A stretch of DNA of 64,000 bases from the NCBI GenBank assembly GCA_002269645.1, contig NIVC01000685.1, forward strand, positions 31,190-95,189, in the 5' to 3' direction. A program made the translations under genes and the position numbers. Source of the DNA: Macrostomum lignano (lineage: Eukaryota). This document shows, piece by piece, positions 42,488 to 64,000 of the stretch; the stretch's first letter is position 1; each line of letters opens with the position of its first letter. The notes under the pieces are model-generated. The model had not been told where the DNA came from, did not search any database, and saw only the letters and a program-made list of their open reading frames with translations.

Positions 42488-44226
42488 AGAGAAGAAGTTG
42501 ACTGTTTTAATCCGTCCCGACTTACAATTTCTTGTTCGGCGAAACTGTTGTGTAGTGATGAATAAACAATAATGTTATAACAATAATAGCATACAGAAGA
42601 CAGTAACATACACAAAAATACAAGAATGCTGTTACTAATTAATTGTATTTTCAGTTCATTATCTGTGTATTTTGTATTAAATAACTTAATTGGCCTAGCC
42701 CCTGGTAACTTTTTAGTGTTTTGTACATTTTCTCGACAATATTTTGTTAGTAGATATGTTGATCAATTGGTTTTCGTTTTCATAAACCCCCTATCAGCCT
42801 AATGATGATGCCATATCAAAACAACAATCAAAACAAGTGATTGTTTTGTTATTTATTCGCTATTTCTATATAAATATTTAAATATTGTGATGACCTTGAA
42901 TGTTTTTTCTGGACTAAAAATTTAACCGAACTGCACTGTAATATAAAGTTGTATTGAAGTTCAACCTATCTGGCCACACTTTTAACTGTTAAAGTTAAAA
43001 CAGCAGTTAGAAGTCGTAATCGTCTGTTGTAATTTTCAATTCATACTTTTGGAGTTTTCTTCATGCTGTTCTAATACATTTTTTGTTTTGTTTTTTACCC
43101 TGTTTTTATTTTGGCTCTTCTCCAAAACTCAGATTTATCAAAGAAATTTTCATGTATTGTAAAAATAATATTCGTTGATGAAAATAACGATATGTTGTTG
43201 AACAAACGCTAGAATGAGGTTAAATATATGCTTAATGTTACAATTTTCAGACTAAGATATTGTCTTGTGTGTTATTAGTTTTTTTGTTTCACTGATTGAT
43301 TAACTAGCTATAAGGCATACTTAGAATGGTGAATCGTGAAGAAACATGATCCGTAGTGTTTAAGACTCCGTTCTTTTCGTTTCTTTTCTCGTTTCTTGAT
43401 AAGCTTGTTTAGACTTTTAAACTTATTCTAAGTTAGTTAATTTTATAAGAATTTCTGGGCAACAGTTAGTGCGACTGCATTGAACTGGTTTGTCCAATTC
43501 TCGCTTTGGATTTGCAGTCCTGAAAACTTGAAAAGCATAAAATCCAAGTGCCTGTGCATAGCAAGCAAGAGAGCAAGAGAGCAAAGGCCCCCCCCCCCAG
43601 TTCAGGCCGATTAACAGCCGGTAAACAATCTTTCCTCTTGCCTGCTTGTGTCTGACTTTGACCCTCTTTCCTTACTGCTCTCTCATTGGCTGAGCTGGAT
43701 TGAGCCTACCCCCTAAGATTAGTTTCGTCCATCTGTGCTTGGCCACTCGCCTTACTTCTCTCTCATTGGCTGAGCTAGATTGGGGTCAGCTGTTCAGGAG
43801 GGGTGTTCAAACGTCTGTGGAATAGGGGGAGGGGGGAAGTGATTTCCATCCTCAACCCAAATACGAGCGTATCATAAACCCGAAATATCACAAATTTCAT
43901 AAACCCAAAATTGCTAGCAACATCCATCATAAACCCAAAATATCATAACTCCAAAAATGACAACAATGTCTAACTCTATTTCGGTTTTCGGAGTTATATT
44001 TCGGGTTTGTGATGGCGACCCGTGGAATAGACCTGACTGCTTGCCTCCTAGTTGGCTCCGGATCGACTGTCGCCCCCTTGATTTTCGACAGTGCTCAAAA
44101 CAACTTTGAACTGAACAAAGATATTTCATACCTAGTCTTTTGTTATAATACATTTCTTCTTTTCAGCTCTAGGACTAATCAAAATACAGAACTTTGCTCA
44201 GCCTCCAGAAGCGTTAAGCCGAGAGA

Positions 44227-45303
44227 ATGCCGCCAGCCGAAAGCAGATCCAACCTGACTAATTTAAAGATCCAGGGCAACAATGTTTCCAACGATGTTCC
44301 CGACGCCGGTTCGTCCTCTGCTCCTATCATGGACAACTACGAGTATATGTTATTGCTCGTATTTTTCGTAGGAATTATAGTTTTGATTTATCTTGGGCTC
44401 CAAAACGTAAAGACTCTAATAAACACACATAAAAATACCGTTACCAATATAATCACCGTTGAAAGATTGTACTCTGCGTCAAAGAACCTCTGCCGCTGCG
44501 TTCGAAAGTTTTTTACTAGGTCTAGAAAGCAAGCAGAAAAACGTGTAAACCGAGGAAACCAGCTGAAGCTTCGTCAAAACTGGCGCGAAGCTGGGCAGGA
44601 ATTCGAAGCCGCAGCCGAGCAGTTCTCAAAGCAGAGGCGATGCGAGCTCGATGCGGCCAACAATTACTCAGAGGCTGCGAACTGCTACCGCAAGCTGCCA
44701 GACACGAGACCGAAGGCCGTGCGGTGCCTGCAGCAAGCGGCCGAGATGTACGCAGAGCAGGGCCAGTTCAGCATCGCTGCCAGACAGCTGGAGGAGGCTG
44801 GAGACCTGCTGGCTGCATCTCAGCAAGTCGAGGAGGCCATCGATGTCTACGTGAGAGCGGCGGACTTCTGGAGCGGCGAGGACAGTCCGGCCAGCGCTGC
44901 GGGCAGCCGCGCCAAGGCCGCGGAGTTGATGGCGGACTGCGGGAGGCTGGCAGAGGCGGCCGCGGTGTTTGAGGATCTGGGAGTGTCGGCTGAGCAGCAC
45001 AGTCTGTTGAGCTTCGGAGCCAAGGACCACCTGGCCAAGAGCTGTCTGTGCCTGCTGTGCTCAGCAGCTGCGGGAGTCGGCGAGAAGGCGGAGCAGCTGG
45101 CTGTGCTGTGCGGCTCGTTCAAGGACACCGACGAGCTCTCGCTGGTGAGGTCGCTGGCTTCGGCTACCGACGCTCGCGACGTCGCAGCCGTCGACGCCGC
45201 GGTGTCCGAGTTCGAGAAGTTCAACAACTTGGACGTCTTCGCCAGGAGGATGCTGCACCAGCTGAGGAAAATCGCAGCCAGAGAGATAACCACGCTGACC
45301 TGA
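44227..45303 (+). CDS. Alpha-SNAP-like protein B1 (358 aa) with an N-terminal transmembrane helix
   Basis: Intact ORF. TM MLLLVFFVGIIVLIYLGL is followed by the SNAP domain (NWREAGQEF, GQFSIAAR, FWSGEDS, LLSFGAKDH, NLD...TLT*). Confidence 0.9.
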   Translation: MPPAESRSNLTNLKIQGNNVSNDVPDAGSSSAPIMDNYEYMLLLVFFVGIIVLIYLGLQNVKTLINTHKNTVTNIITVERLYSASKNLCRCVRKFFTRSRKQAEKRVNRGNQLKLRQNWREAGQEFEAAAEQFSKQRRCELDAANNYSEAANCYRKLPDTRPKAVRCLQQAAEMYAEQGQFSIAARQLEEAGDLLAASQQVEEAIDVYVRAADFWSGEDSPASAAGSRAKAAELMADCGRLAEAAAVFEDLGVSAEQHSLLSFGAKDHLAKSCLCLLCSAAAGVGEKAEQLAVLCGSFKDTDELSLVRSLASATDARDVAAVDAAVSEFEKFNNLDVFARRMLHQLRKIAAREITTLT

Positions 45304-45493
45304 ACTTTAATTCTCTTTGGAAGATATTGGAACTTGAATTTGCTTGTCTGATATTTATCATAGTTGTTTAACATCGAGTAAAGAGGGTTCGAGGTGGATT
45401 GTTTTTTTTCATATTCAAGGCTGTTTTGTTAAAGTTTTTCAGACATTAGAGTGTTTTTAGGAAACCAGAAACTCATCCATACGGTCTCCTACA

Positions 45494-46161
45494 AAGAGAC
45501 AGGAGCGCCAACCAAAAGACAGGGGTGACACCAAGAGACAGGGGTGCCACCAAGAGACAGGGATGCCACCAAGAGACAGGGGTGACACCAAGAGACAGGG
45601 GTGCCACCAAGAGACAGACAGGAGTGACACCAAGAGACAGGGGTGCCACCAAGAGACAGGGGTGACACCAAGAGACAGGGGTGGCACCAAGAGACAGGGG
45701 TGCCCACCAAGAGACAGGGGTGCCCACCAAGAGACAGGGGTGCCCACCAAGAGACAGGGGTGCCCACCAAGAGACAGGGGTGCCACCAAGAGACAGGGAT
45801 GCCACCAAGAGACAGACAGGAGTGACACCAAGAGACAGGGGTGCCACCAAGAGACAGGGGTGACACCAAGAGACAGGGGTGGCACCAAGAGACAGGGGTG
45901 CCCACCAAGAGACAGGGGTGCCCACCAAGAGACAGGGGTGCCACCAAGAGACAGGGGTGCCACCAAGAGACAGGGGTGCCACCAAGAGACAGGGGTGCCA
46001 CCAAGAGACAGGGGTGCCACCAAGAGACAGGGGTGCCACCAAGAGACAGGGGTGACACCAAGAGACAGGGGTGACACCAAGAGACAGGGGTGCCACCAAG
46101 AGACAGGGGTGACACCAAGAGACAGGGGCGCCCACCAAGAGACAGGGGTGCCCACTAAGAC
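45494..46161. repeat. 19-20-bp G-rich minisatellite (ccaccaagagacaggggtg), roughly 33-35 units
   Basis: Period 19 is visible at 45961/45980, with 20- and 23-bp variants. It is absent from the paralogous flank of B2. Confidence 0.95.
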
Positions 46162-47488
46162 CCCAAATATTCGCGGACCTTAGAGTTTAAGGCGGCCAAC
46201 TCTAATTAAAATCCTGCATTCGGCACAGACAGAAAATTTCATCATAATGTCAATGTTCCCCTCAAACTGTAATAATTCATAAAACAGGGCTATCTAATTT
46301 GTATCTTTTGTTTAACGAAAGAGCACTTTAACAGTATGTATTCACCTTTACAATATGGATTAATTATTAGGTATTTTTTTATTTAAAGTGTTCAAAAAGT
46401 GGTGCTACGAGCGTTTTTAAACGCTTTTAAATATTTCTTTTTTATTTTGAAAGACTAGCTACGATTTACATTCAGATGAATTTATTTACATTAGTTTCTA
46501 CAAGCACGCCCTAACTGTTTGTAATTTATTTTTTCTTTCTAATATAGCTCGTAAGATTTAGAGTAAGAATTTACAGAACAATTGCAGATTTTTTCTTATC
46601 AAGAAGATTGGGTTGCTGAGAGACTTTCTGCTTGAAATTAAGATTACAATGCTTTGTAAGCCTTTATAAAAAATTCAGGAGCAGGTTCAGGATTTGTATA
46701 GCCGCGAGGGCCCCTCATATGTCTGTCATCCGTGGGTGCATCAGATTGTTATATGAGTTATGTCATGAATTAGACAAGGATCATAACGGTTTCTTACGAC
46801 TCGTTTTCTGTTGGAAAGACAGCTGGACTCCTTTGACCCCAGTCGATCTACTACTGCATAAATTTTTATCTTTTATCTGTAAGATCTGCTAATTTTATTG
46901 TACTTCTTCTGTATTTTATGTACTTTAGCGCTAAGAGTTTGTTTACCATACGTGATAGTTTCTTTTCTTGATGCGATCAAAAAATGTTCTTAATAACATA
47001 GAAATAATAAATTATTTGTTTCGACGGTTTGAATTTTTTCGGAAAAGGTTTCGTTTTAATGATGATATTTCATAATTTAGGAAAATATTGTCGAGTCTAG
47101 CTACTGTTCTAGGACAAAACATCTTCATATTTACGTGAATTTTCTTACAAAATCTTTCGAAAGCATGCAATTATGTTATTAATAATCTTCTAACTAGCTC
47201 GTAGTTTAGTTTTAGTAATTCTTAGTAGCTGCTCGTAACTTAATAACATTTATCTAAAATCTACCAATCAATTCTAGTATGTAACAAACGACTCAAAGTT
47301 TAACGTTCAGGAACAAGCTTATCTCAGCTTTGACGAAGCACTTTCGGGGAGTTATAGGGAAAACTCTTTTTCGGTATTGTGAATGCTTGTAGCTTGAACT
47401 ATGTCTATAGCTGTTGAATCTAAAATATTCCACACCTTTTCTTCCATCATTTCGCTCCCGCGCGTTACTAATCTACTTTAAACGTATC

Positions 47489-47659
47489 CAGGGGCGGACC
47501 GAGGGGGGGGCCAAGGGGTCCATGGCCCCCCCTCAGCTCTGCCAAAAAGATCCTCAGATGTATTGGCTTAGGATATTGGTACCCTAATTGCAGCTCTGGC
47601 CTGACCAGACGTGAGGCTTGCCCCCCCCCCCTCTAGAAAAAATCCTGGGTCCGCCCCTG
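47489..47659. mobile_element. 171-bp MITE with 12-bp TIRs and an 8-bp TSD (hAT-like)
   Basis: TIRs are caggggcggacc and ggtccgcccctg. The direct repeat aacgtatc flanks the element at 47481-47488 and 47660-47667. An 8-bp TSD is typical of hAT elements. Confidence 0.9.
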
Positions 47660-47769
47660 AACGTATCTGGCTTGAAAATTAGTAAAAACGATAGTTAAAA
47701 TTTTACGAACATGTGCGCTCATTATTAGCTGTTTTAGCTAGGCTCAGCATTTTTCTAATAAATAATTTA

Positions 47770-47787
47770 AACTGACACCTTTTTCAG
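47770..47787 (+). promoter_or_regulatory. Candidate 3' splice or trans-splice acceptor (ctgac...ttttcag) 5 nt before the A2 start; similar Y-tract+CAG sites precede A1, B1, B2, B3, B4 and B5
   Basis: CAG ends at 14365, 44166, 47787, 52043, 56728, 58953 and 61208, each 2-60 nt upstream of the proposed ATG. Confidence 0.5.
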
Positions 47788-48458
47788 AAAAAATGCCATC
47801 ATTTATTGATCGAGTTCAGATGCTGTGTCGATTGTGTCGATTGGACGTATGGTTCGCCAACTGGTTGCTGCAAACATTGAAACCGTATTTATTTACAATA
47901 TTCACATTATTCACCATACTACTGTTAGTAGTAGATTTACTAAAGGACGTAATGAAAGCAGTAGTAATAGCAACAGTAGAAGCAGCAAGATTTTCCTCCA
48001 TTAGTTTAGTAATAGAAGTAGTAGTATTGGGAGGACTGATATGGGCCGCTTTTCAACATTTACGCGGAAGAACGCCTTCATTAGAAGGGCAAGGCGGCGA
48101 ACGTTCAAACATAAATCTTATCTCGCGCGATTCTAGCCATGAAGACATCAGCAGGACACCTGAAGGCCCGGTGCGTAATTTTAATCCTTTAAATTGGAAC
48201 TTCTCTGCTCTTCTCTTCTCTGCAATTGTTAGTACAGTTTGGATAGGTCAGATGAGTCAGCAAACAGTGAGGGAAGATCCGAAAGCCACTGAACCGAGTC
48301 AATGTGGTAAACATCAATCATCAAGTTCATGGTCGAGTAATATTTTAACTGGTTGGACATGGTTCAAAGATGCAGCCGTGGCTAAACTTACTGCTGAGTC
48401 GGTTAAGAAGACAGTATCTTCAGTCCTTAGTACGGTTACTGAACACCGTCCTGACGAT

Positions 48459-48710
48459 CAGACAACAAAGGCTGACGATCAGACAACAAAGGCTGACGAT
48501 CAGACAACAAAGGCTGACGATCAGACAACAAAGGCTGACGATCAGACAACAAAGGCTGACGATCAGACAACAAAGGCTGACGATTGGACAATAAAGGCTG
48601 ACGATCAGACAACAAAGGCTGACGATCAGACAATAAAAACTGAAGGTCAGACAATAAAGGCTGACGATCAGACAGCGAGGATTGAAGGTCAGACAACAAA
48701 GGATGGAGGT
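48459..48710 (+). repeat. 12 in-frame units of the same 21-bp QTTKADD repeat inside A2
   Basis: Same unit sequence as 14438-41444. Confidence 0.95.
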
Positions 48711-48965
48711 CAGATGAGTCAGCAAACAGTGACTGAAGATCCCAAAACAAATGCTGGAGGTCAGATGAGTCAGCAAACAGTGACTGAAGATCCGAAAACA
48801 AATGCTGGAGGTCAGATGAGTCAGCAAACAGTGACTGAAGATCCGAAAACAAATGCTGGAGGTCAGATGAGTCAGCAAACAGTGACTGAAGATCCGAAAA
48901 CAAATGCTGGAGGTCAGATGAGTCAGCAAACAGTGACTGAAGATCCGAAAACAAATGCTGGAGGT
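48711..48965 (+). repeat. 51-bp coding repeat (QMSQQTVTEDPKTNAGG), 5 copies
   Basis: Copies start at 48711, 48762, 48813, 48864 and 48915; a diverged sixth starts at 48966. Confidence 0.95.
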
Positions 48966-51409
48966 CAGATGAGTCAGCAAACAGTGAGTGAAGATTCGAA
49001 TGCCACTGAACAGAGTCAATGTGGTAAACATCAATCATCAAGTTCATGGTCGAGTAATATTTTAACTCGTTGGACCTGGCTCAAAGATGCAGCCGTGGCT
49101 ACACTTCATGGTGCTGATGCTGCTGAGTCGCTGATGCAGAAAGCCAACAAATTCAAACTGGAAAAGAACTGGAGCGAAGCCGGAGACGCATTCTCAGAAG
49201 CTGCAGAGAAATTTCGTCATCAAGGTGGCAACACAATTCACGAGCAGGCGGATTGCTATCAAAATGCTGCCAACTGTTTTTGCAAGACGGACAAATCCAA
49301 AGCCGTTCACTGCTTTGAGCGAGCAGCTCAACTTTACTGCGAAGTCGGCCAGTTCAGCATTGCGGCCAGACTGATGGAGACAGCCGGTGAGCTACTGAGG
49401 AATTGGCAAGGAAACTTCCCGCTTGGAATACTCAGAACAGTTCCGATCCTGAGCTCAGTTTTTTAGAGTTCGTAAGCGATGTGAATTCAACTTATTTAAT
49501 GAAAGAAGCCATAAACCGCTACCAGAAGGCAGCAGACCACTTCAGTGCTGAGAACAGTGTCGCCAGTGCCGCAAGCTGTAGAACCAAACTGGCCATTTTG
49601 CTTGGCGATTCGGGCCAACTCCGTGTTGCTGCCAACGAATTCGCAAAGCTGGGTGAAGAGGCTCAAGGCCACGGTCTGCTTCAGTTCGGAGCCAATGATC
49701 ACATGCTCAAGTCGTGCCTGTGCCTTGCAATGAATCCCGATGCCTGCTCAAAACAGGCCGATGAACTGGCAGCCAAGAGCGAGTCATTCGCTAGAAGTGA
49801 CGAGTTCGCTCTGGTCAAAGGTCTTGCCACAGCCAACAGTGTCGAAGCTTTCGACAAGGCGGTGGCCGAGTACGAGAGATTCAACAATTTGGACGAGTTC
49901 GACATGCGCCGGATAACAGATGCTCGTAAAAATTATCGGAGCTCGACGCCGTCGACGGTTGAGCTTGTTTAGAGAGAAGAAGTTGACTGTTTTAATCCGT
50001 CCCGACTTACAATTTCTTGTTTGGCGAAACTGTTGTGTGGTGATGAATAACACTAATTATGTTATAACAATAATAGCATACAGAAGACGTTAACATACAC
50101 AAAAATACAAGAATGCTGTTACTAATTGTATTTTAAGCTCATTATCTGTGTATTTTGTATTAAATAACTTAATTGGCCTAGCCCCTGGTAACTTTTTGGT
50201 GTTTTGTATATTTTCTCTACAATATTTTGTTAGTAGAGATAGGGATCAATTGGTTTTCATTTCATAAAATTCCTATCAGACTAATGATGATCCATATTTC
50301 AGTACAGTTTAGAACAACGGAAAGGCCCGTTGACAATCAAAACAAGTGATTATTTTGTTACAATATTCGCTATATTTAAATATTGCGACGACCTTGAATG
50401 TTTTTTTCTTGACTAAAAATTTAACCGAACTGCATTGTAAAGTTGTCTTGAAGTTCAATCTGTTTGGTCACACTTAACTGTTGAAGTTAAAACAGCAGTT
50501 AGAAGTTGTAATTGTCGGTTGTAATTTTCATACTTTTGTAGTTTTCTTCATGATATTTTCAATCGTATCTGTCTGTTTTATTTTGACTCTTATTTTCACC
50601 CCAAATCTCAGATTTATCCAGAGTTTTATACGTGTATTGCTAAAATAATATTCGTTGATGAAATTAACGATACGATATGTTGTGGAACAAACGCAGAATG
50701 AGGTTCAATATATGCTTAATAGTAGCAGTCTTAGACTAAGACATTTATTGTGTGTTATTAGTTTTTTGTTTTTCTGATTGAATAACCAAAGAAAGGCTTA
50801 TATACTTTGTAGATAGAATCATTGAAGAAACATGATCCGTAGTGTTCAAGACTCTGTTCTTTTCGTTTCTTTTCTCGTTTCTTGATAAGCTTGTATAGAC
50901 TTGTAAACTTATTCTAAGTTAGTTAATTAGCCATTCTGGGTATCAGTTTGAACTGCTTTTGTCCAGTTTTCGCTTAATTGGGTCCGCAGTCTTGAAAACT
51001 GGAAGAGCCCAAAATTCAAGTGCGTGTGCATAGCGAGTAAGAGAGAAAGGGGGTGGCACCCCCAGCCCGACTAACAGCCAGTAAACAGGCTTTTCTCTTG
51101 CCCGCTTGTGTCTGACTTTGACTCTCTCCTTACTGCTCTCTCATTGGCTGAGCTGGATTGGGCCTGCCCCCCCCCAGGCTGAGTTTGTGTCTGAGTCTGT
51201 GCTTGGCCACTCGCCTTTCTTCTCTCTCAGTGGCTGAGCTAGATTGGGATCAGCTGGTGTTTAGACGTCAGTAGTGGAATAGGGGGGGGGAGGGAATCAC
51301 AAACCCAAAAAATCACAACTCCAAAAAGCGCTTTCCACCATCAACCCGAAATATCAGAAACCCGAAATATGAAAATACAAACCCGAAATTGCTTAGCAAC
51401 GCCCATTAT

Positions 51410-51780
51410 AAACCCGAAATATCATAAACCCGAAATATCATAAACCTGAAATATCATAAACCCGAAATATCATAAACCCGAAATATCATAAACCCGAAAT
51501 ATCATAAACCCAAAATATCATAAACCCGAAATATCATAAACCCGAAATATCATAAACCCGAAATATCATAAACTTGAAATATCATAAACCCGAAATATCA
51601 TAAACCCAAAATATCATAAACTCGAAATATTATAAACCCGAAATATCATTAACCCGAAATATCATAAACCTGAAATATCATAAACCCGAAATATCATAAA
51701 CCTAAAATATCATAAACCTAAAATATCATAAACCCGAATTATCGTAAACCCGAAATATCACAAATATCATAAACCGGAAA
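51410..51780. repeat. 16-bp minisatellite (aaacccgaaatatcat), about 23 units
   Basis: Period 16 is visible. Only 3-4 degenerate units occur at the paralogous site 43870-43950. Confidence 0.95.
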
Positions 51781-52098
51781 TAGCTAGCAACGCCCATCAT
51801 AAACCCAAAATATCATAACTCCGAAGATGACAACAATGTCTACTCTATTTCGGTTTCCCGAGTTATACTGAAGTATTTCAGGTTTGTGATGGCGACCCGT
51901 GGAAAAGACCTGACTGCTTGCCTCCTCGCTGGCTCCGAGTCGACTGTCGCCCCCTTGATTTGCGACAGTGCTCAAAACAACTTTGAACTGAACAAAGATA
52001 TTTCATACCTAGTCTTTTGTTATAATACATTTCTTCTTTTCAGCTCTAGGACTAATCAAAATACAGAACTTTGCTCAGCCTCCAGAAGCGTTAAGCCT

Positions 52099-53187
52099 AT
52101 GCCGCCAGCCGGAAGCAGATCCAACCCGACTAATTTAAAGACCCAGGGCGAAAATGTTGCCGACTCTGGTTCCTTCTTTGCACCTATCATGGACAACAAT
52201 CTGTTATTGCTCGTATTTTTCGTAGGAATTATAGTTTTGATTTATCTTAGGCTCCAAAAAAAGACTATATTAAACACACATAAAAATACCGTTACCAATA
52301 TAATCATCGTTGAAAGATTGTACTCTACGTCAAAGAACCTCTGCCGCTGCGAGTACTCTGCGTCAAAGAACCTCTGCCTCTGCGTTCGAAAGTTTTTTAC
52401 TAGGTCTAGAAAGCAAGCAGAAAAACGTGTAAATCGAGGAAACCAGCTGAAGCTTCGTCAAAACTGGCGCGAAGCTGGGCAGGAATTCGAAGCCGCGGCC
52501 GAGCAGTTCTCAAAGCAGAGGCGATGCGAGCTCGATGCGGCCAACAATTACTCGGAGGCTGCGAACTGCTACCGCAAGCTGCCAGACACGAGACCGAAGG
52601 CCGTGCGGTGCCTGCAGCAAGCGGCCGAGATGTACGCAGAGCAGGGCCAGTTCAGCATCGCTGCCAGACAGCTGGAGGAGGCTGGAGAGCTGCTGACTGC
52701 ATCTCAGCAAGTCGAGGAGGCCATCGATGCCTACTTGAGAGCGGCGGACTTCTGGAGCGGCGAGGACAGTCCGGCCAACGCTGCGGGCAGCCGCGCCAAG
52801 GCCGCGGAGTTGATGGCGGACTGCGGGAGGCTGACAGATGCAGCCGCGGTGTTTGAGGATCTGGGAGTGTCGGCTGAGCAGCACAGTCTGTTGAGCTTCG
52901 GAGCCAAGGACCAGCTGGCCAAGAGCTGTCTGTGCCTGCTGTGCTCAGGAGCTGCGGGAGTCGGCGAGAAGGCGGAGCAGCTGGCTGGGCTGTGCGGCTC
53001 GTTCAAGGACACCGACGAGCTCTCGCTGGTGAGGTCGCTGGCTTCGGCTACCGACGCTCGCGACGTCGCAGCCGTCGACGCCGCGCTGTCCGAGTTCGAG
53101 AGGTTCAACAACTTGGACGACTTCGCCAGGAGGAGGCTGCACCAGCTGAGGCAGTTTGTGGCTTCTGGCGGGGTGCAGCTGCAGTAG
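52099..53187 (+). CDS. Alpha-SNAP-like protein B2 (362 aa from ATG 52099; frame open from 51886) with an N-terminal TM helix
   Basis: Intact ORF. The ATG is homologous to the B1 start. TM LLLLVFFVGIIVLIYL is followed by RLQKK and a SNAP domain ending VQLQ*. Confidence 0.9.
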   Translation: MPPAGSRSNPTNLKTQGENVADSGSFFAPIMDNNLLLLVFFVGIIVLIYLRLQKKTILNTHKNTVTNIIIVERLYSTSKNLCRCEYSASKNLCLCVRKFFTRSRKQAEKRVNRGNQLKLRQNWREAGQEFEAAAEQFSKQRRCELDAANNYSEAANCYRKLPDTRPKAVRCLQQAAEMYAEQGQFSIAARQLEEAGELLTASQQVEEAIDAYLRAADFWSGEDSPANAAGSRAKAAELMADCGRLTDAAAVFEDLGVSAEQHSLLSFGAKDQLAKSCLCLLCSGAAGVGEKAEQLAGLCGSFKDTDELSLVRSLASATDARDVAAVDAALSEFERFNNLDDFARRRLHQLRQFVASGGVQLQ

Positions 53188-54046
53188 TTGGGAAGGGTTT
53201 TTGGCGAATGAAGAGAGTTGCGGACGGATTGTTTTTATTCATTGGCAAGGCTGTTTTGTGAACGTTTTCCAGACATTAGCCTGTTTTTCGAAAACAAAAA
53301 ACTCATTTAAACGGTCGCGCACTAAGACTTCAAATATTTGCGGATCTTAGAGCTTGTGGCGGCCAATTCTAATTAAAATCCTGCATCTGCCATTGACTGA
53401 AGGTTTTATCATAATTTCAAGTTTAACCTCAAACTGTAAAATTTCATAAAATAGAGATATCCAATCTGTACCTTTTGTTCAACGAAAGCAGCGTAAAAGT
53501 ACATTTAGGTTTACCATATCGATTATTAAGTATCAATAAATCAATTTCTGTAACAAACTTTTAGCAAAAAATTATTTTTCATATTGTTTTCTTGTCTGAA
53601 TTTTAAACCGAAGAGTTAAAATATAGATGAATTTGTTTGCATCTGTTTGCAGCAACACTCGCTTTCTGTTGGTAATTAGTTATTTTTTTAATAAGCTCGT
53701 GTTTAAGTTAAGACACTTTTAAATTATATGTCTAAATATTGAATTACCGAGATTGAGTAGAATCCTAAAATTGTCAGACTGCAATGCTTTGTAAGTCTTG
53801 GTGCAAATATTTTAGGAGCAGGTCTGGGATTTTTCACATATTTCATTGGGGTGCATATCTTGAATCTCAGTTTTATCGTAGACTCGAGATTAGATCTAAC
53901 TAATATTTCAGCTCTCTTAAACAGGGCTTACAGTGTTGATGCTTATCCCAAAATGGCTTAGGTTTGAACCAATATAAAAATGCATGAAATTAATATTTGT
54001 AATGATCGCTAAAATAGGAAGTATCCTTTTCTCATTGGAGACTGAC

Positions 54047-54404
54047 GGGCTGTGTGCACCCTGGCGCACTTTAAGCGACATTGTCACACAACCGGCGAGA
54101 GGCATTGCTGCCCATTCCGCCGACTCCCCTGAGCAGGCACACAAGCCGCGCGGATACGTACGCAGTCATACGCACAGGCACACACTCACACAGGAGGGTA
54201 CGCGGCCCTAACTTTGTTTATTATTTAGGCATGTACACTTCACTGTGCCTTGGGGGTTGGTCCTCAAGCTGGGCGTTAATTGCACGAGCAGAGCCAAGCC
54301 AAAATTCCAATTTAGCCCCAAGCTAATGTGACTGCACTTGGAATCGAGCCTGGGCCGCTGGCACATGAGGAGAGCGACGCACTAGACCACTGGGCTAAGG
54401 CCCC
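54047..54404 (-). mobile_element. tRNA-derived SINE (~360 bp)
   Basis: The reverse complement begins ggggccttagcccagtggtctag (A box) and contains ggctcgattcc (B box). It is colinear with 60673-61030. Confidence 0.85.
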
Positions 54405-54910
54405 TGAAGTATTGCCTGATTAATTCCGTGAGGGATAATGCAAGCTGCGTTTTTCATTTGCTGACATTTGATTTTGTATTTCAAAGTTAACTAGCTAGTT
54501 AATGAGTCCTGTGTATCTTGTTTTTTGTCTGTTGCGTCTTAGAAGTTTTCTCGTCCAAAATGTTAGGTGAAATTGACGTGTTTTGTTAAAATACAGTAGT
54601 ACCGAAGTTCAAAGCCTCCTAAACAGAACCAGATGTCCCAATCCTTTAGTGTCAGTTGACCTTGAATGGCTCAGAAAACTGACTCCTGAAAAGTCTGTAT
54701 ACTAATACGAGCATTGTTTTCGATTTCATGTTGTCATGGCCCAAATTCGGAGGAAACTATTCCGAGCTGCGCTAAACATTATATTATCCAAATTTTATCT
54801 CCAACTTATTATAAGCGTAGTATTGGCATAATCTCGAACTGTTATTGTCAAGACTTTCTAACCTAATAACATTATTTTTAACTTTAATTTCTGCATGTGG
54901 AACATAAAAA

Positions 54911-55953
54911 ATGAGTAAATCAAAAGCTGCTGATCCAGCAGTCGGGATTGAAGATCAAACAACAGGTCAGCTGGGTCAGCAACCAGTGACTGAAGTTCCC
55001 AAAGCCACTGACCAAAGTACAAGTGGTAAACATCAATCATCAAGTTCATGGTCGAGTAATATTTCAATTGGTTGGAGATGGCTCAAAGATGCAGCCGTGG
55101 CTACACTTCCTGATGCGGATGCTGCTACGTTGCTGATGCAGAGAGCCAACAAATTCGAACAGAAAGAGAAGTGGAGCGAAGCCGGAGACGCATTCTCCCA
55201 AGCTGCAGACAAATTTCGTCATCAAGGTGGCAACACAATTTACGAGCAGGCGGATTGCTATCAAAATGCTGCCAACTGTTTTTGCAAGACGGACAAATCC
55301 AAAGCCGTTCACTACTTTGAGCGAGCAGCTCAACTTTACTGCGAAGTCGGCCAGTTCAGCATTGCGGCCAGACTGATGGAGACAGCCGGTGAGCTGACTG
55401 AGGAATTGGCAAGGAAAAATCTCGCTTCGAATACTCAGAGCAGTTCCGATCCTGAGCTCAGCAGCTTTGAATTCGTAAGCGATGTGAATTCAATGCAAGA
55501 AGCCATAAACCGCTACCAGAAGGCAGCAGACTACTTCAGTGCTGAGAACAGTGTCGCCAGTGCCGCAAGCTGTAGAACCAAACTGGCCATTTTGCTTGGC
55601 GATTCGGACCAATTCCGTGATGCTGCCAACGAATTCGCAAAGCTGGGTGAAAAGGCTCAAGGCCACGATCTGCTTCAGTTCGGAGTCGCTCAAGTCGTGT
55701 CTGTGCCTTGCAATGAATCCTGAAGCCTGCTCAAAACAGGCCGATGAACTGGCAGCCAAGAGCGAGTCATTCGCTAGAAGTGACGAGTTCGCTCTGGTCA
55801 AAGGTCTTGCCGCAGCCAACAGTGTCGATGCTTTCGACAAGGCGGTAGCCGAGTACCAGAGGTCCAAATTTCCCAAAAAATTGGACGAGTTCGACATGCG
55901 CAGGATAACATGCTCGTAAAAGCGTGCAGAGCTCAACGGTCGAGCTTGCTTAG
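54911..55953 (+). pseudogene. Alpha-SNAP-like gene A3, no TM segment, two frameshifts
   Basis: The SNAP domain is closely similar to A1/A2. There is a net 11-nt loss at ~55687 (ggagtcgctcaag versus ggagccaatgatcacatgctcaag), a 9-nt in-frame insertion at ~55860 and a 2-nt deletion at ~55910. The restored frame ends STVELA* (TAG 55951-55953). Confidence 0.85.
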
Positions 55954-56734
55954 AGAGAAAAAGTTGGCTGTTTTTTAATTCGAACCGACTTATACTTTCT
56001 TGTTGGATGAAATTGTTGTGTAGTGTAGTGAGTCATCTATAACAAAACGAGTATATATTTAAATAGTAGCATAAAGAAGACAAGTACAGTATTTTTCCTT
56101 AACAGGTTATTCGGAAAGTTTTTGAACCTCTTTTCGGCTTTGCTTGCTCAAATGTGTTCCTGTGTTTCACTTCATCTTAAGAAATGCCAGTATCTACTCG
56201 TAATAAAGAAAATGTACACCGTATCAGCAGCTTAAGATGACTATTTTTGAGTAAATATTATATATATATATATCTCATTTCATTCTGACTTTTATAGTTC
56301 GTAAAAACTGCATGACCGGATATTTTAGATATTCTAACGATATTTCCTGTATAATAGTTTGATCAAATTGATTTACTAATAGTATGCAGCTATCAAAAAA
56401 CGTTAACAACATGCAAATAATAAATCATTTGTGTCGACTTTAATTTATGACAAAGTACTTCGTTTTTATGTTGTTATTTCTACATTAATTTACAGTTTAG
56501 CGTCTGTTTAGCGTCTGTCGTTCGTCTGTTGAACGAAATACTGGCATCTGCGTATATTTTCTTGCACAGTTTTTCGGAAACCCGCTCTTCTGCTTTTAAT
56601 GATATTCTTATCTTTTAGTCTCTAGTAATTCTCTGACATACTTACATGCACGCTCATCAATAACTATTTAGCAGAGCTTGGCTTTTTTCTCTAATAGCAA
56701 TTCAAATAGACTTTTGCCCCTTTTTCAGATACAA

Positions 56735-57835
56735 ATGCCACTATTTATTAAGAACCTGCTTGAAGGAGTTCAGTGGCTTGGCAATTGGGTCAAACCGTCA
56801 GTTAACTGGTCTCTGCAGACTTTAAAAACCTTGTTAGTACTGGTATGGACCTTTTCTCAGCCAATAATACAATCACTCATTAAGAAAATGCTTGAGCTAC
56901 TTCAGGTGCTGTGCTATTTGGTTAAGGCGTCGGTTTACTGGTTGCTGCACACTTCAAAATCCTGTTTATTTAAAATAGTAGCATTGGTATGGTCCACACT
57001 TCAACCAACATACAACCAACATTATGGTCCACACTTCACTCTATTCGATCAGAGCAACAGAACAGCTTCATCGCCTGTGCAAGAGGGAAATCGTTTAAAG
57101 CTTCAACAAAACTGGAGCAAAGCTGGGCGGGCATTCGAAGCCGCGGCCGAGCAGTTCTCAAAGCAGAGGCGACGCGAGCTCGATGCGGCCAACAATTACT
57201 CGGAGGCTGCGAACTGCTACCGCAAGCTGCCAGACACGAGACCGAAGGCCGTGCGGTGCCTGCAGCAAGCGGCCGAGATGTACGCAGAGCAGGGCCAGTT
57301 CAGCATCGCTGCCAGACAGCTGGAGGAGGCTGGAGACCTGCTGGCTGCATCTCAAGATCAAAGAACCTCTATCGATGCCTACTTGAGAGCGGCAGACTTC
57401 TGGAGCGGCGAGGACAGTCCGGCCAACGCTGCGGGCAGCCGCGCCAAGGCCGCAGAGTTGATGGCGGACTGCGGGAGGCTGGCAGATGCAGCCGCAGTGT
57501 TTGAGGATCTGGGAGTGTCGGCTGAGCAGCACAGTCTGTTGAGCTTCGGAGCCAAGGACCAGCTGGCCAAGAGCTGTCTGTGCCTGCTGTGCTCAGGAGC
57601 TGCGGGAGTCGGCGAGAAGGCGGAGCAGCTGGCTGGGCTGTGCGGCTCGTTCAAGGACACCGACGAGCTCTCGCTGGTGAGGTCGCTGGCTTCGGCTACC
57701 GACGCTCGCGACGTCGCAGCCGTCGACGCCGCGGTGTCCGAGTTCGAGAGGTTCAACAACTTGGACGACTTCGCCAGGAGGAGGCTGCACCAGCTGAGGC
57801 AGTTTGTGGCTTCTGGCGGGGTGCAGCTGCAGTAG
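56735..57835 (+). CDS. Alpha-SNAP-like protein B3 (366 aa) with a Trp/Leu-rich hydrophobic or amphipathic N-terminus
   Basis: Intact ORF from ATG 56735. The N-terminus has an internal duplication (VKPSVNWSLQT..LVW / VKASVYWLLHT..LVW), followed by the B-type SNAP cassette. Confidence 0.88.
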   Translation: MPLFIKNLLEGVQWLGNWVKPSVNWSLQTLKTLLVLVWTFSQPIIQSLIKKMLELLQVLCYLVKASVYWLLHTSKSCLFKIVALVWSTLQPTYNQHYGPHFTLFDQSNRTASSPVQEGNRLKLQQNWSKAGRAFEAAAEQFSKQRRRELDAANNYSEAANCYRKLPDTRPKAVRCLQQAAEMYAEQGQFSIAARQLEEAGDLLAASQDQRTSIDAYLRAADFWSGEDSPANAAGSRAKAAELMADCGRLADAAAVFEDLGVSAEQHSLLSFGAKDQLAKSCLCLLCSGAAGVGEKAEQLAGLCGSFKDTDELSLVRSLASATDARDVAAVDAAVSEFERFNNLDDFARRRLHQLRQFVASGGVQLQ

Positions 57836-58955
57836 TTGGGAAGGGTTTTTGGCGAATGAGGAGAGTTGCGGACGGATTGTTTTTTATTCATTGGCAAGGC
57901 TGTTTTGTGAACGTTTTCCAGACATTAGCGTGTTTTTAAATAACTTTGATCATAACTTTGGTTCATTTTTTTAATCAAAAATGTATGTAGTCCTAATCCT
58001 AGTTGTGTGTTATTTTAATTTTTCATCTATCTGATGCACAATTAGTAATCCATTGTTTAACAAACATTAAAACTGGAATCGGCCTGTTTCATGAGGATCA
58101 GACTAATTATTGATCAATCTCTCAGTTTCCAATGCGCCGAATTCTGCTTTTTACTCGTAAACTGGTTTTTATCCATTTTCCAATCCTTTTTTATTGATTT
58201 TTTGCCGAATTCAGATATTTTTTTATCATTAGTATCGACTTTAAACTACAGGTGTTGTTATACTTCGAAGTGTTTTACATGGTGACATTGATTTCATATT
58301 AAATAACCTTTGTTGTAAAAACATCGCTTTGTATTGTGAAACATCCAGCAGTCTTGCAGGCAACCGGCTGACATGTTAAACTATTTTTAACTTCAAAATA
58401 TTCGTTTCATCAGAACAAAACGTGTGTCAAAGTTTAGTGAAAAAATGTTTTTTAAAAACTTTCCAGCTGATTTTAACAAGTTATCAAATTTACATAGACC
58501 GCGGTCTTTAACCTTCCAGCTTAAAAACGTAAATATGACATTTTTAACAATAAGTTTCTAACTAAACCTGTTTGACAGCTGTTTATTTAAATTTTGTAGA
58601 TTATAATGAATGAGACTTTTTTAGTTCACGTCTCCCTAATACTCGTGTCTGGATGCTGTATTTTGTTTGTCTATTTAAAATAAATAAGAATGCCGCCTCC
58701 ATCAGATCTCATTTAATAGAATACAAATTAGTTGAACACGTGGTTAGAGCTACATAGTTTGACAGAATCTGTATCTGACGAATATTTGTTAAAGTGATGA
58801 TGCTATGCTGACAGCTATATTCAGTGTATATCAAGTCATTTTTAGCATTCAAAATCAGTCGGTGTAGATCAAAGAACACTTCAAAACGTTTTATTGCCAT
58901 TTTCATTCCCGTTTTTCTGTTTTAAAACCGCGGCTCCCACCTGCGTCTCACAGCT

Positions 58956-59978
58956 ATGAAAATTGGACGTCTACAGAACTCCAGCGCAAGTTGTGTTCAC
59001 ATATACATACAGCTCTACTACCGTTATACTTCATCAGGCAGTTCTAATCTAACAAAGAGCTGCAACTATACTGAACTAGAACATCATCGGGCTACGACAA
59101 CTACTGATGAAATTTCGGTTGTTTGCTCATGGTGGTTAGCAGTGCTGCTATCATCATTGATGCTTTGGCTTCTATATCAAGTCAAGAAAATTGCAACAGG
59201 AGAAACAGCGGAGAACTTGGTTGCCAAAGGAATCAAACACAAAGCCGATAAAACTTGGAGCGAAGCTGGACAGGCATTCGAAGCCGCGGCCGAGCAGTTC
59301 TCAAAGCAGAGACGATGCGAGCTCGATGCGGCCAACAATTACTCGGAGGCTGCGAACTGCTACCGCAAGCTGCCAGACACGAGACCGAAGGCCGTGCGGT
59401 GCCTGCAGCAAGCGGCCAAGATGTACGCAGAGCAGGGCCAGTTCAGCATCGCTGCCAGACAGCTGGAGGAGGCTGGAGACCTGCTGGCTGCATCTCAAGA
59501 TCAAAGAAACGCCATCGATGCCTACTTGAGAGCGGCGGACTTCTGGAGCGGCGAGGACAGTCCGGCCAGCGCTGCGGGCAGCCGCGCCAAGGCCGCGGAG
59601 TTGATGGCGGACTGCGGGAGGCTGGCAGAGGCAGCCGCGGTGTTTGAGGATCTGGGAGTGTCGGCTGAGCAGCACAGTCTGTTGAGCTTCGGAGCCAAGG
59701 ACCACCTGGCCAAGAGCTGTCTGTGCCTGCTGTGCTCAGGAGCTGCGGGAGTCGGCGAGAAGGCGGAGCAGCTGGCTGGGCGGTGCGGCTCGTTCAAGGA
59801 CACCGACGAGCTCTCGCTGGTGAGGTCACTGGCTTCGGGTACCGACGCTCGCGACGTCGCAGCCGTCGACGCCGCGGTGGCCGAGTTCGAGAGGTTCAAC
59901 AACTTGGACGACTTCGCCAGGAGGAGGCTGGACCAGCTGAGGCAGTTTGTGGCTACTGGAGGGGTGCAGCTGCAGTAG
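58956..59978 (+). CDS. Alpha-SNAP-like protein B4 (340 aa) with an N-terminal TM helix
   Basis: Intact ORF. TM ISVVCSWWLAVLLSSLMLWLLY is followed by QVKK and the B cassette ending VQLQ*. Confidence 0.88.
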   Translation: MKIGRLQNSSASCVHIYIQLYYRYTSSGSSNLTKSCNYTELEHHRATTTTDEISVVCSWWLAVLLSSLMLWLLYQVKKIATGETAENLVAKGIKHKADKTWSEAGQAFEAAAEQFSKQRRCELDAANNYSEAANCYRKLPDTRPKAVRCLQQAAKMYAEQGQFSIAARQLEEAGDLLAASQDQRNAIDAYLRAADFWSGEDSPASAAGSRAKAAELMADCGRLAEAAAVFEDLGVSAEQHSLLSFGAKDHLAKSCLCLLCSGAAGVGEKAEQLAGRCGSFKDTDELSLVRSLASGTDARDVAAVDAAVAEFERFNNLDDFARRRLDQLRQFVATGGVQLQ

Positions 59979-60672
59979 TTGGAAAGGGTTTTGTGCGATT
60001 CAAATTTTATTGAGAAACACATTTTAGTGTGCATACGAAAGTTGAATAGTTATTTCAAGGTACCGTAGGTTCTAATATCCTTGTTTGTTATAGACCGTCA
60101 ATTTTATGCCAGTGATTTTTTACTCTATATTTAATTAGTGGCGTTACTTATATAAGACCGAATTAGTAGAAAGCTGTAAACATTATCCTTACGAGTTGTA
60201 TAGCATTGTAATATTTCGGTAGCTTGCTTGTTTTGTCTCCAGAATTCAAAAGGTACGTAATTTCACTTGCATATTTTTTCAGTCTGCTTGCATTATTGAA
60301 TCATTTTAAGCTGTAGCTGGTTATGATGCTGCTGTGAAATTTAAGTGCCGCATCATGCCTATTCCGTCTTGAGCCCGACAAAGAAAACTAGCATCGATCG
60401 TTGCCATGTAGCTAATTACTGTGCTATTTCTTAGATTGCTTGCTTCCTAGCTAAAAATTTGTCGGTTTTTTCATTTTAGCCGTACGCAAAGAATTGTCTC
60501 AATCGTTGTAGAAATTAATAGTTTAAAAAAGAAACTGTTGTTCTAATCTTCTACATTCAAAAGTTGACCCAAAAGTTGTTTAAATGCCTCGATATACTGT
60601 GCTCGTTTCATCTAAGTTGCAAAACATATCTGCAGGTTTGAATTTTCGCCAGAAAAATTTACGCAATTGGTT

Positions 60673-61040
60673 GGGAGACGTAGCCCAGTGGTCCAGCGCG
60701 GCGCTCTGGTGTGCCAGCGGCCCAGGCTCGATTCCAAGTGCAGTCACATTAATATTGGAGCTAAATTGGAACCTCGGCTTGGCTCTGCTCGTGCAATTAA
60801 CGCCCAGCTTGAGGGCCAACCCCCAAGGCACAGTGAAGTGTACATGCCTAACGATAAACAAAGTTAGGGCCGCTGTACACTCCTGTGAGTGTGTGCCTGT
60901 GCGTATGACTGCGTACGTATCCCCGCGCTTGTGCACCTGCTCAGGGGAGTCGGCGGAATGGGGGCAGTAATGCCTCTCGCCGGTTGTGTGACAATGTCGC
61001 TTAAAGTGCGCCAGGGTGCACACAGCCCTATGCCTCTAAA
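60673..61040 (+). mobile_element. tRNA-derived SINE (~365 bp)
   Basis: A box TAGCCCAGTGG at 60681-60691 and B-box-like GGCTCGATTCC at 60725-60735. An inverted second copy lies at 54047-54404. Confidence 0.85.
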
Positions 61041-61267
61041 ACCTTAACGTAACGTCTGCCTCACTTCCTACAAGCTGCCAGTGTTGATCAAAGAAACCAA
61101 GAACTATGTTCCCGTTCCATGTTTAAAGAGCTTAGGAACAGATAATATCTTTATGTTCCAACTTCATTTTAACGCTATTTTCAATATCACTATTCACCCT
61201 TTTTTCAGTGCATTTTCACCCAAAGCATACTAAAGAACATCTGTTTAATAACTCGCAAGAATCAAGA

Positions 61268-62347
61268 ATGGAGACTTCGAATAGCAGCGAAATCAAAAGT
61301 TCAAATAGTACCGCAATGGCAGCAGTGGAAAGTGCCGCTGCTGCTGATGCCAACAGTACGACCGGACCAACGACGAGTGTCCTAACGACGTCAAATCCGT
61401 CTTATTTAAACACAACTACTATCGACACGACTACATCAGCTCCAACAGCTCAGCCAACTGTGCCACCAGCGAAATTACATACAGCCTATATCTTTGTCGG
61501 GTTTCTGTGCATCTTGGTAGTATTGCTACTGCTGGTACTGTACTTTCTGTTGTTTAGAAAGCGTCAAACGCACGGATCGCAGCAGCGATTAATCGACGAT
61601 GGCAACAGGAACAAACATGATAAAAACTGGCTTGAAGCTGGCAAAAAGTTTGAGACTGTTGCAGATCGCTTCTCGAAGCATCGCGAGCTCGATGCGGCCA
61701 ACAATTACTCGGAGGCTGCGAACTGCTACCGCAAGCTGCCAGACACGAGACTGAAGGCCGTGCGGTGCCTGCAGCAAGCGGCCGAGATGTACGCAGAGCA
61801 GGGCCAGTTCAGCATCGCTGCCAGACAGCTGGAGGAGGCTGGAGACCTGCTGGCTGCATCTCAGCAAGTCGAGGAGGCCATCGATGTCTACGTGAGAGCG
61901 GCGGACTTCTGGAGCGGCCAGGACAGTCCGGCCAGCGCTGCGGGCAGCCGCGCCAAGGCCGCAGAGTTGATGGCGGACTGCGGGAGGCTGGCAGAGGCAG
62001 CCGCAGTGTTTGAGGATCTGGGAGTGTCGGCTGAGCAGCACAGTCTGTTGAGCTTCGGAGCCAAGGACCACCTGGCCAAGAGCTGTCTGTGCCTGCTGTG
62101 CTCAGGAGCTGCGGGAGTCGGCGAGAAGGCGGAGCAGCTGGCTGTGCTGTGCGGCTCGTTCAAGGACACCGACGAGCTCTCGCTGGTGAGGTCGCTGGCT
62201 TCGGCTACCGACGCTCGCGACGTCGCAGCCGTCGACGCCGCGGTGTCCGAGTTCGAGAGGTTCAACAACTTGGACGACTTCGCCAGGAGGAGGCTGGACC
62301 AGCTGAGACAGTTTTTAGCTACTGGTGACAGTGTGCAGTTACTGTAA
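61268..62347 (+). CDS. Alpha-SNAP-like protein B5 (359 aa): Ser/Thr-rich N-terminus, TM helix, RKR, SNAP domain
   Basis: Intact ORF from ATG 61268 (frame open from 61208). TM AYIFVGFLCILVVLLLLVLYFLLF is followed by RKR and the B cassette ending VQLL*. Confidence 0.9.
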   Translation: METSNSSEIKSSNSTAMAAVESAAAADANSTTGPTTSVLTTSNPSYLNTTTIDTTTSAPTAQPTVPPAKLHTAYIFVGFLCILVVLLLLVLYFLLFRKRQTHGSQQRLIDDGNRNKHDKNWLEAGKKFETVADRFSKHRELDAANNYSEAANCYRKLPDTRLKAVRCLQQAAEMYAEQGQFSIAARQLEEAGDLLAASQQVEEAIDVYVRAADFWSGQDSPASAAGSRAKAAELMADCGRLAEAAAVFEDLGVSAEQHSLLSFGAKDHLAKSCLCLLCSGAAGVGEKAEQLAVLCGSFKDTDELSLVRSLASATDARDVAAVDAAVSEFERFNNLDDFARRRLDQLRQFLATGDSVQLL

Positions 62348-63514: not shown

Positions 63515-63800
63515 TGCTCAGCGGTAATAAACGCCCACGACCCCTAGTTCGATTGAGTACGCAAACACATTCATTTGGGGCTTGTGTGCACGAAAATGGA
63601 GGCTGTCGTGAGATTCACAGCCATGAGGGCCAACCCCCAAGGCACAGAGTGCACATGCCTGACCGATTAGATAGCCAGGACCGCTGTACACCCTGTGTGA
63701 GCGTGTGCATGAGTGCCGTGCCTGCGTACACAGCGTATCGGCGCGCTTGTGTGTGCTGAGGAGTCAGCGGAGTGCGCAGAATTGTCTCAGCGCTGGTTGT
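63515..63800 (+). mobile_element. Diverged relative of the tRNA-derived SINE; ends approximate
   Basis: Shares gagggccaacccccaaggcacag...tgtaca.c..gtgag.gtgtg with 60810-60900. It has A-box-like gctcagcgg and B-box-like agttcgatt upstream. Confidence 0.6.
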
Positions 63801-64000
63801 GAGAGGATTTCGTTAAAGGCGTAGCATTATTTCCAGCTTCCAGTCCACCTGGTAATATTTTTAGAAGTCCCTGTACAAGCTTTTTAAAGTAGGTCAATTT
63901 TAACGATAGCTTTTATTTTATTTTACGTTAAACATATCCGAATTAGTTATAGTTTCTGCGCATATTTATTCAGTAATAACTAAATGTTTGCTCTGGCGCC

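Follow-up and report, generated by a model that had tools for sequence, protein, structure and literature searches.

Regional gene conversion is documented in the clustered protocadherin variable exons of fugu, zebrafish and human (PMC1852091; Noonan et al. 2004, as cited in that paper), and in fugu the GC content at third codon positions (GC3) is ~41%, versus 55-69% in the homogenised part. Here we describe a related arrangement in Macrostomum lignano, in a stretch of 64,000 nucleotides (hereafter the window) that forms the final 64 kb of contig NIVC01000685.1 (C685) in assembly Mlig_3_7 (764 Mb, 5269 contigs). The window carries a tandem array of intronless genes related to alpha-SNAP, five of which (B1 to B5) are intact, and their common core is probably homogenised by interlocus gene conversion together with occasional unequal crossing-over. 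This mode of evolution, regional concerted evolution, is well known; the gene family appears to be new.

As with the protocadherins, the B genes are tandem paralogs with divergent 5' parts and with 3' parts homogenised at the nucleotide level, synonymous sites included, and GC3 is higher there; the homogenisation is lineage-specific in both cases. They differ in that the B family homogenises a whole, presumably cytosolic, effector domain, and its divergent parts are non-homologous anchors rather than diverged copies of an ectodomain. The B genes are also complete and intronless rather than alternative first exons, and they can be compared over three neopolyploid subgenomes. Their GC3 contrast is larger (~0.45 versus 0.80), with conversion no more than a possible cause of it. 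GC enrichment of converting multigene families, mammalian histones and Hsp70 among them, is said to have been described by Galtier in 2003 and by Kudla and colleagues in 2004; refs 26 and 27 of PMC1852091 also concern it. In the B family, too, the homogenised tract is where GC3 is high, but conversion need not be the cause, and a relative with only one copy in this genome has a GC3 almost as high.

At the protein level the B genes resemble canonical alpha-SNAP/Sec17 (PDB 3J96, 1QQE; PF14938) in matching its residues ~46-286, in having a Pfam SNAP domain, and in their penultimate leucine. However, identity is only 31-41%, transmembrane (TM) or lipidation-type anchors replace the N-terminus, the acidic C-terminal tail is lost, and the genes are multicopy and intronless. 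Canonical alpha-SNAP is soluble and is recruited to membranes via SNAREs and lipids, whereas the B genes have predicted anchors instead. The alpha-SNAP paralogs of protists are soluble as well. Expansions of such paralogs are reported, for example in Leishmania (PMC12019078), and from the abstract of that paper they resemble the B family as a lineage-specific duplication of a SNARE-disassembly adaptor, but involve few full-length copies; no tandem array, anchor replacement or concerted evolution is stated in the abstract.

The B genes and their common core

The five intact open reading frames (ORFs) lie on the forward strand within 44.2-62.4 kb of the window, and each contains a Pfam SNAP domain (PF14938, E 1e-47 to 3e-50) spanning profile positions ~32-279 of 282. 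Anchors in the list below are predictions.

44227..45303, + strand: B1; signal-anchor TM segment at residues 36-62, homogenised core 44645-45262, C-terminal tail ...KIAAREITTLT, Pfam SNAP E 3e-50
52099..53187, + strand, open frame back to 51889: B2; core 52464-53151, 5' part B1-like (~86%), tail and flank 53152-53288 B3-like (97.8%)
56735..57835, + strand: B3; its own hydrophobic N-terminus, core 57112-57799, QDQR patch 57355-57367
58956..59978, + strand: B4; TM anchor at residues 53-74, core 59255-59942, QDQR patch 59498-59510
61268..62347, + strand: B5; Ser/Thr-rich N-terminus with N-x-S/T sites, TM segment at residues 68-100, homogenised core 61683-62299
44823..44835, + strand: dimorphic 13-nt block, either CAGCAAGTCGAGGAGGCC (QQVEEA) or CAAGATCAAAGAAACGCC (QDQRNA)

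In the neopolyploid M. lignano DV1, the three subgenomes (S, L1 and L2) diverge from one another by 1.9-2.4% in single-nucleotide polymorphisms. A genome search recovers three arrays in the same gene order, on C685, C684 and C90, which match the three subgenomes, as well as two dispersed B copies on C476 and C109. There are at least five B copies in the window array and 8-9 and 7-8 in the homeologous arrays, with further differences farther along. Copies are denoted W_n (window), R684_n (C684) and R90_n (C90), n being the number of a positional ortholog group set by unique flanks; groups 1, 3, 4 and 5 are represented in all three arrays, and groups 6, 7 and 9 in two.

The original prediction, made from the letters of the window alone, was that B1 to B5 are near-identical in a downstream core and divergent upstream of it, with GC stepping up where the core begins, and windowed identity and GC3 agree on both counts. 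In a five-way alignment of B1 to B5 the mean pairwise identity is ~40% upstream of the core, climbs through 0.70, 0.82, 0.90 and 0.96 between B1 positions 44561 and 44636, remains at 0.96-0.99 up to ~45236 with a single dip at 44786-44835, and is ~0.5 by 45286, around the stop codon. The landmark strings are also in place, with GAAGCCGCGGCCGAGCAG in B1 to B4 (one mismatch in B1) and CGAGCTCGATGCGG in all five genes; the number of chance matches expected is 0. The GC-rich core is 620-700 bp long, and the sequence on either side cannot be aligned between paralogs. Over the ~100 nt of the identity rise the overall GC content goes from 0.43 to 0.65, and GC3, at 0.78-0.82 in the core (~0.80), compares with 0.37-0.48 in the N-terminal parts of the same ORFs and with 0.43-0.50 in the ORFs nearby; between genes, the overall GC content is 0.31-0.37.

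The identity boundaries are staggered, lying at ~44545 in most groups, at ~44596 in group 4 and at 44642 in group 5, while B1 becomes identical to most of its paralogs from ~44580; some tracts extend past the stop codon, by 138 nt in B2 and B3 and by 109 nt (94-97%) in group 1 and the C90 group-7 copy. SNAP homology runs 50-90 nt upstream of the identity boundary, with ~65% DNA identity in B4 and B5, a codon indel included. The Pfam SNAP match likewise begins 25-40 codons before the boundary, and this segment of B4 and B5 contains the motif ...K.W.EAG..FE.... B5 is homogenised only from 61683 onwards (44642 in B1 coordinates), and a diverged but SNAP-homologous stretch precedes this point at 61601-61682. 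Because homology continues past it, the identity boundary is an edge of exchange and not a fusion point.

Within the core, variant sites give conflicting groupings, as had been foreseen. The QQVEE/QDQR block groups B3 with B4, while sites 44894 (PAS/PAN), 44955 and 45030 (KDH/KDQ) group B2 with B3; sites 44922 and 44964 group B3 with B5, and site 45256 groups B4 with B5. Among the five window copies, 83 of 190 pairs of informative sites fail the four-gamete test, the minimum number of recombination events (Rm) is 6, and one pattern gives way to another repeatedly from end to end of the core, which does not divide into two blocks. B2 is a mosaic on a larger scale, again as anticipated, since its upstream region is shared with B1 (85.8% over 751 nt), and its C-terminal tail and 138 nt of 3' flank with B3 (97.8%).

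Comparison of the three homeologous arrays

Independently evolving coding cores should follow the ortholog groups and differ less than their flanks, but the opposite is seen. Between W_4 and R684_4 there are no differences in 2070 flanking positions and 12 in 618 core positions (p=2e-8), and between W_3 and R684_3 there are none in 1004 and 10 in 618 (p=6e-5). The same excess is found against C90, with W_5 and R90_5 differing by 1.4% in the flank and 3.1% in the core (p=0.008), and W_4 and R90_4 by 1.7% and 3.7% (p=0.004). No core contains an indel in any of 14 ortholog comparisons, whereas the flanks have 2-20 indels each, and the reading frames are therefore kept under selection, despite weak constraint on the amino acids.

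Several exchanged tracts can be delimited. The 12 core differences between W_4 and R684_4 consist of a block of 11 substitutions within 13 nt and one further site. Presence of the 13-nt QDQR block varies within ortholog groups 3, 4 and 5; B4 has it, and its counterparts in C684 and C90 lack it. The converted tract carrying the block is minimally 13 nt and maximally 57-117 nt long, and no external donor was found in a genome-wide search, the block being restricted to six known B copies. A long tract is shared by B5 and paralog 9 of C684, which differ at only one of 617 core positions (44642-45258), while the preceding 81 nt contain 32 differences and the following 51 nt contain 34; both ends are defined, with ~60% identity directly outside. 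The B5 core has 1-3 differences from paralog 9, versus 19 core sites from its C90 ortholog, R90_5. A second block, of three substitutions (44962, 44963 and 44966), is common to R90_1 and R684_6 only. Tracts of ~13-600 nt, and the two independent unequal crossovers described below, are directly readable because the subgenomes serve as built-in orthologs.

Groups 1, 3, 4, 5 and 7 are not recovered in a maximum-likelihood (ML) tree of the core, and the approximately unbiased (AU) test on the core rejects the ortholog clades of group 3 (p=0.004), group 5 (p=0.005) and group 1 (p=0.03). As many as 29 of the 74 polymorphic sites vary in at least two ortholog groups, and at 28 of these the groups have the same two alleles, even where these differ by a transversion; not counting the main block, 18 sites are shared, versus 5.5 expected (99th percentile 11). 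With the block removed there are 138 incompatible site pairs versus a mean of 45 (95th percentile 96) in simulations on the ML tree only. A GENECONV-style permutation yields significant shared fragments, after Bonferroni correction, for five of the ten window pairs (B1-B2, B1-B5, B2-B3, B2-B5 and B2-B4). The expectation that ongoing gene conversion homogenises the effector domain is thus sustained by the core-versus-flank excess, the AU rejections, the delimited tracts and the excess of shared polymorphisms, and these data support exchange having continued after the three subgenomes diverged.

Rearrangement on a larger scale involves a second type of SNAP paralog. These A-type genes (A0, A1 and A2) have lower GC and ~45% amino-acid identity to the B genes, with which they are interleaved, so that the first three B genes lie in A-B repeat units. 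They also provide an internal control, with copies 79-92% identical and a GC3 of 0.50-0.57.

41460..42560, + strand: A0; SNAP part of an A-type paralog, 3' of a 27-kb array of 21-bp repeats, frame broken
47793..49972, + strand: A1; A-type SNAP paralog, frame broken near 49400-49470
54911..55936, + strand: A2; A-type SNAP paralog, frame broken near 55700, forming the third A-B unit with B3

There are two distinct hybrid genes. R684_3, at the group-3 position of C684, begins as B2, although with deletions and a premature stop, and ends as B3, whose 3' flank it also has; in C90, the second A-type gene begins as A1 and ends as A2. Each homeolog thus lacks one A-B unit that the window has, with a junction of its own, and the hybrids and the copy-number differences between homeologs indicate that unequal crossing-over acts as well. 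Further B copies are altered: C684 copy 8 (R684 45239-45777) has a frame-breaking internal deletion of 140 nt, and C90 copy 7 (R90 37411-38218) an in-frame internal duplication of 129 nt of the core. Mosaic structure, discordance between orthologs and paralogs, delimited tracts and hybrid genes are all features of these arrays.

We propose that repeated non-reciprocal exchange between paralogs (interlocus gene conversion), in tracts of <120 nt to ~600 nt, would together with crossing-over hold the core at ~97% identity, synonymous sites included, and that unequal crossing-over in the core or in adjoining A-type genes would generate hybrid genes and change copy number. Anchors and tails would stay distinct because exchange stops where homology stops. 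The companion proposal, that the anchors diversify, fares less well: anchors are indeed non-homologous between paralogs, but they are 96-100% conserved between homeologs, and new anchors arise mainly via rearrangement.

Alternative explanations

Several observations weigh against gene conversion as the explanation. First, several of the tests depend heavily on the single 13-nt block. Without it the AU test rejects group 1 alone, so it is the long tract and the flank-versus-core comparisons that carry the case. A neighbour test similar to the pairwise homoplasy index gives p=0.0005 when the block is counted as 11 sites and p=0.15-0.22 when it is counted as one, although this test has low power because incompatibility is uniformly high. 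Second, if ~200 core sites can vary, 14 shared polymorphic sites are expected versus the 18 observed, which is not significant; the identical allele pairs still argue for exchange under this assumption. Third, a ratio of non-synonymous to synonymous polymorphism (pN/pS) of ~1, as reported below, would also fit partly decaying genes. Finally, the assembly was built by Canu from PacBio reads and polished by Pilon with Illumina reads (mapped by Bowtie2) and RNA-seq reads (mapped by STAR), and chimerism between subgenomes is reported for 36% of its length. The hybrids could thus be assembly chimeras, and isolated shared single-nucleotide variants could be polishing artefacts. Identity between C685 and C684 also switches inside the B3 core, from 91-94% on its upstream side to ~100% on its downstream side; the cause could be a recombinant haplovariant or a join made in assembly, and a join would count against us. 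From window 57098 to 64000 (R684 28220-35124) the two contigs are 99.57% identical over 6.9 kb, with ~30 differing positions; the flanks sampled beyond the B3 and B4 cores, ~5 kb in all, show no substitution, and C685 ends 1.7 kb past B5.

That GC-biased gene conversion causes the GC3 step, as the original prediction suggested, is possible but doubtful. The GC and identity steps do coincide within ~50 nt at the 5' boundary, and the core GC3 of 0.80 exceeds the 0.50-0.57 of the less homogenised A-type paralogs. Variants that replace a strong (G or C) by a weak (A or T) base outnumber the reverse by 32 to 11, predicting an equilibrium GC of ~0.39 versus the 0.65 observed. Derived weak-to-strong alleles are present in more copies on average (4.9, n=11) than derived strong-to-weak alleles (2.5, n=32), but the difference is not significant (Mann-Whitney p=0.12). 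Moreover, the clearest spreading tract exchanges an allele with 12/18 GC for the AT-richer QDQR allele with 7/18 GC, and an unlinked canonical alpha-SNAP gene is GC-rich at third positions.

C4409 1378-2004 and 2601-2915: canonical alpha-SNAP gene, with a homeolog on C150; GLFGLFG loop, C-terminus ...ADEPELT, GC3 0.73-0.76

On these three grounds a GC-biased component of conversion is unsupported so far. The dispersed copies on C476 and C109 also have a GC3 of 0.59-0.64, even in their N-termini. Because the canonical and dispersed genes are GC-rich too, an inherited or selected codon bias would suffice, and the step may simply be where SNAP coding sequence that is old and GC-rich meets N-termini that are younger and AT-rich; GC-biased conversion may play a part, but the data neither require nor establish it.

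It is improbable that the core spread recently without any conversion, as a GC-rich, 5'-truncated SNAP segment that was copied and gained unrelated N-termini. The canonical gene contains one intron, filled with a GC-rich repeat, which the A and B genes lack, and homology starts at a common point, about alpha-SNAP residue 46-50, as in a truncated retrocopy; the GC3 of the canonical gene and the N-termini that cannot be aligned between paralogs are likewise as such a spread would have them. Speculatively, intron loss and the common truncation point may mean that both A and B genes descend from a 5'-truncated retrocopy. A young spread would not, however, leave SNAP homology at ~65% for 50-90 nt upstream of the boundary in B4 and B5, nor would co-duplicated A-B units be 79-88% identical in A and ~86% in the upstream part of B1 and B2 while 97.5% identical in the core. 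It also predicts a tree, whereas the cores differ between positional orthologs whose flanks are identical, blocks and polymorphisms are common to paralogs, and there are about three times as many incompatibilities as in tree-only simulations.

An assembly or polishing artefact, in which Pilon overwrote copies using reads from one paralog or contigs were joined within the repeat, is scarcely probable. The polishing procedure, the chimeric fraction and the C685/C684 switch from ~92% to ~100% in the B3 core all speak for it. However, the copies are not collapsed, because each of them keeps private variants, 34 of the 72 polarised sites being singletons, and PacBio errors are mainly indels, of which the cores have none. 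Reads mapping best elsewhere could not import 11 mismatches in 13 nt, and the QDQR block is also variably present in the third array, which is 1.4-1.7% diverged. The ends of the tract shared by B5 and paralog 9 are sharp and lie at the limits of homology. Polishing would hardly produce multi-substitution blocks, a 617-nt tract with such abrupt ends, or what is seen in the third array.

Protein-level constraint fails to account for the identity of the cores because pN/pS is ~1 (pS 0.034 and pN 0.031 among 17 cluster cores, a ratio of 0.9-1.0, compared with 0.46 against the dispersed C476 copy; synonymous divergence between window copies is 0.014-0.063). Purifying selection alone on a protein, RNA or DNA element after old duplications is barely conceivable: the core is a conserved domain with frames kept free of indels, but similarity is no lower at non-synonymous than at synonymous sites and no higher either, variants are spread equally over the three codon positions, and selection offers no route to ortholog-paralog discordance or block sharing. 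We infer that it is conversion, and not selection, that maintains the uniformity of the core.

Neighbouring features, predicted proteins and implications

Repeats are abundant around these genes. The 21-bp tandem array at 14436-41440 (+ strand; 27 kb, ~1290 copies, 88% matches) encodes heptads such as ADDQTTK and TEGQTTK and runs into A0 on the same strand, its frame being broken at many points; A1 is preceded by shorter versions (48451-49000). The array may represent a mucin-like N-terminus of giant size or a coding microsatellite that has expanded. Directly 3' of B1 (45494-46152) is a GC-rich 19-bp tandem array, AAGAGACAGGGGTGCCACC, of ~0.66 kb, which is ~2.2 kb long in the C684 homeolog (R684 20575-22815), and B2 is preceded by a tandem array of a 16-bp unit at 51408-51764, the whole of 51251-51931 being missing from the C684 homeolog. 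SINE-like repeats of ~350 bp (GC ~0.55, 91.5% mutual identity) are present between B genes at 54047-54397 and 60681-61028 (inverted), with a partial copy at 63624-63818; no tRNA gene that would account for them was detected in the window by ARAGORN. Farther upstream, a GC-rich (0.59) retroelement remnant at 10849-12841 (- strand), with an ORF that by eye is RNase H-like, lies in AT-rich intergenic DNA, and two long + strand ORFs at 2-2542 (846 aa) and 2810-3733 (307 aa) have no Pfam match at E<=0.01 and are 98% conserved in the C684 homeolog.

The B core matches the PDB alpha-SNAP structures over residues ~46-286 (E 2e-29), and the B genes lack helix alpha1, most of alpha2, and the hydrophobic loop at residues 27-32, with no GLFGLFG present. 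In alpha-SNAP this loop serves in membrane attachment (PMC12923601, citing Winter et al.). In its place a hydropathy scan picks out hydrophobic segments of 18-33 residues in groups 1, 2, 4, 5 and 7, with basic residues on their C-terminal side. The predicted anchor is a single hydrophobic segment in groups 1, 2, 4 and 7, and a Ser/Thr-rich stretch with N-x-S/T sites followed by a TM segment in group 5; the N-terminus of group 6 has a Cys-rich, lipidation-like motif (MGNICSC...), and the C476 and C109 copies have a coiled-coil region. The positive-inside rule would place the SNAP core on the cytosolic side, and the B proteins are accordingly predicted, from their sequences, to be cytosol-facing, membrane-tethered SNAP adaptors. 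Four types of C-terminal tail (...TLT, ...QLQ, ...QLL and ...QLA) all keep the penultimate leucine, as does the canonical gene (...ELT). In alpha-SNAP this residue (L294) is needed to stimulate NSF.

The nearest public proteins to the B genes are M. lignano hypothetical proteins with 87-89% identity. When 1.84 billion representative proteins were searched without a profile, nothing fell between M. lignano matches (87-88%) and ordinary alpha-SNAPs of ~290 aa (<=34%), and on current sequence data the B family is lineage-specific. A literature search gave no matches for the annotated gene identifiers and no Macrostomum paper with 'NSF attachment protein' in its title or abstract, and membrane-anchored alpha-SNAP derivatives without the lipid-binding loop thus appear to be an undescribed gene family.

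For genomic work in M. lignano, B core sequences are unusable for orthology or subgenome assignment, and repeats in this short-read-polished assembly call for read-level checks. The case could also yield conversion rates relative to the 2% divergence of the subgenomes. A further proposal, which we regard as unlikely, is that the family comprises at least 20 'addressed' SNARE-disassembly adaptors, in which one exchangeable NSF-recruiting alpha-SNAP module, deprived of the weak membrane loop it once had, is fixed to different membranes by TM, mucin-TM, lipid or giant-repeat anchors and QQVEE/QDQR is a functional dimorphism shuffled between addresses; if this were true, conversion would keep the module uniform and all anchors matched to a single NSF/SNARE machinery. 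If the B genes are functional, they would constitute a natural experiment on SNAP membrane tethering in NSF-driven SNARE disassembly.

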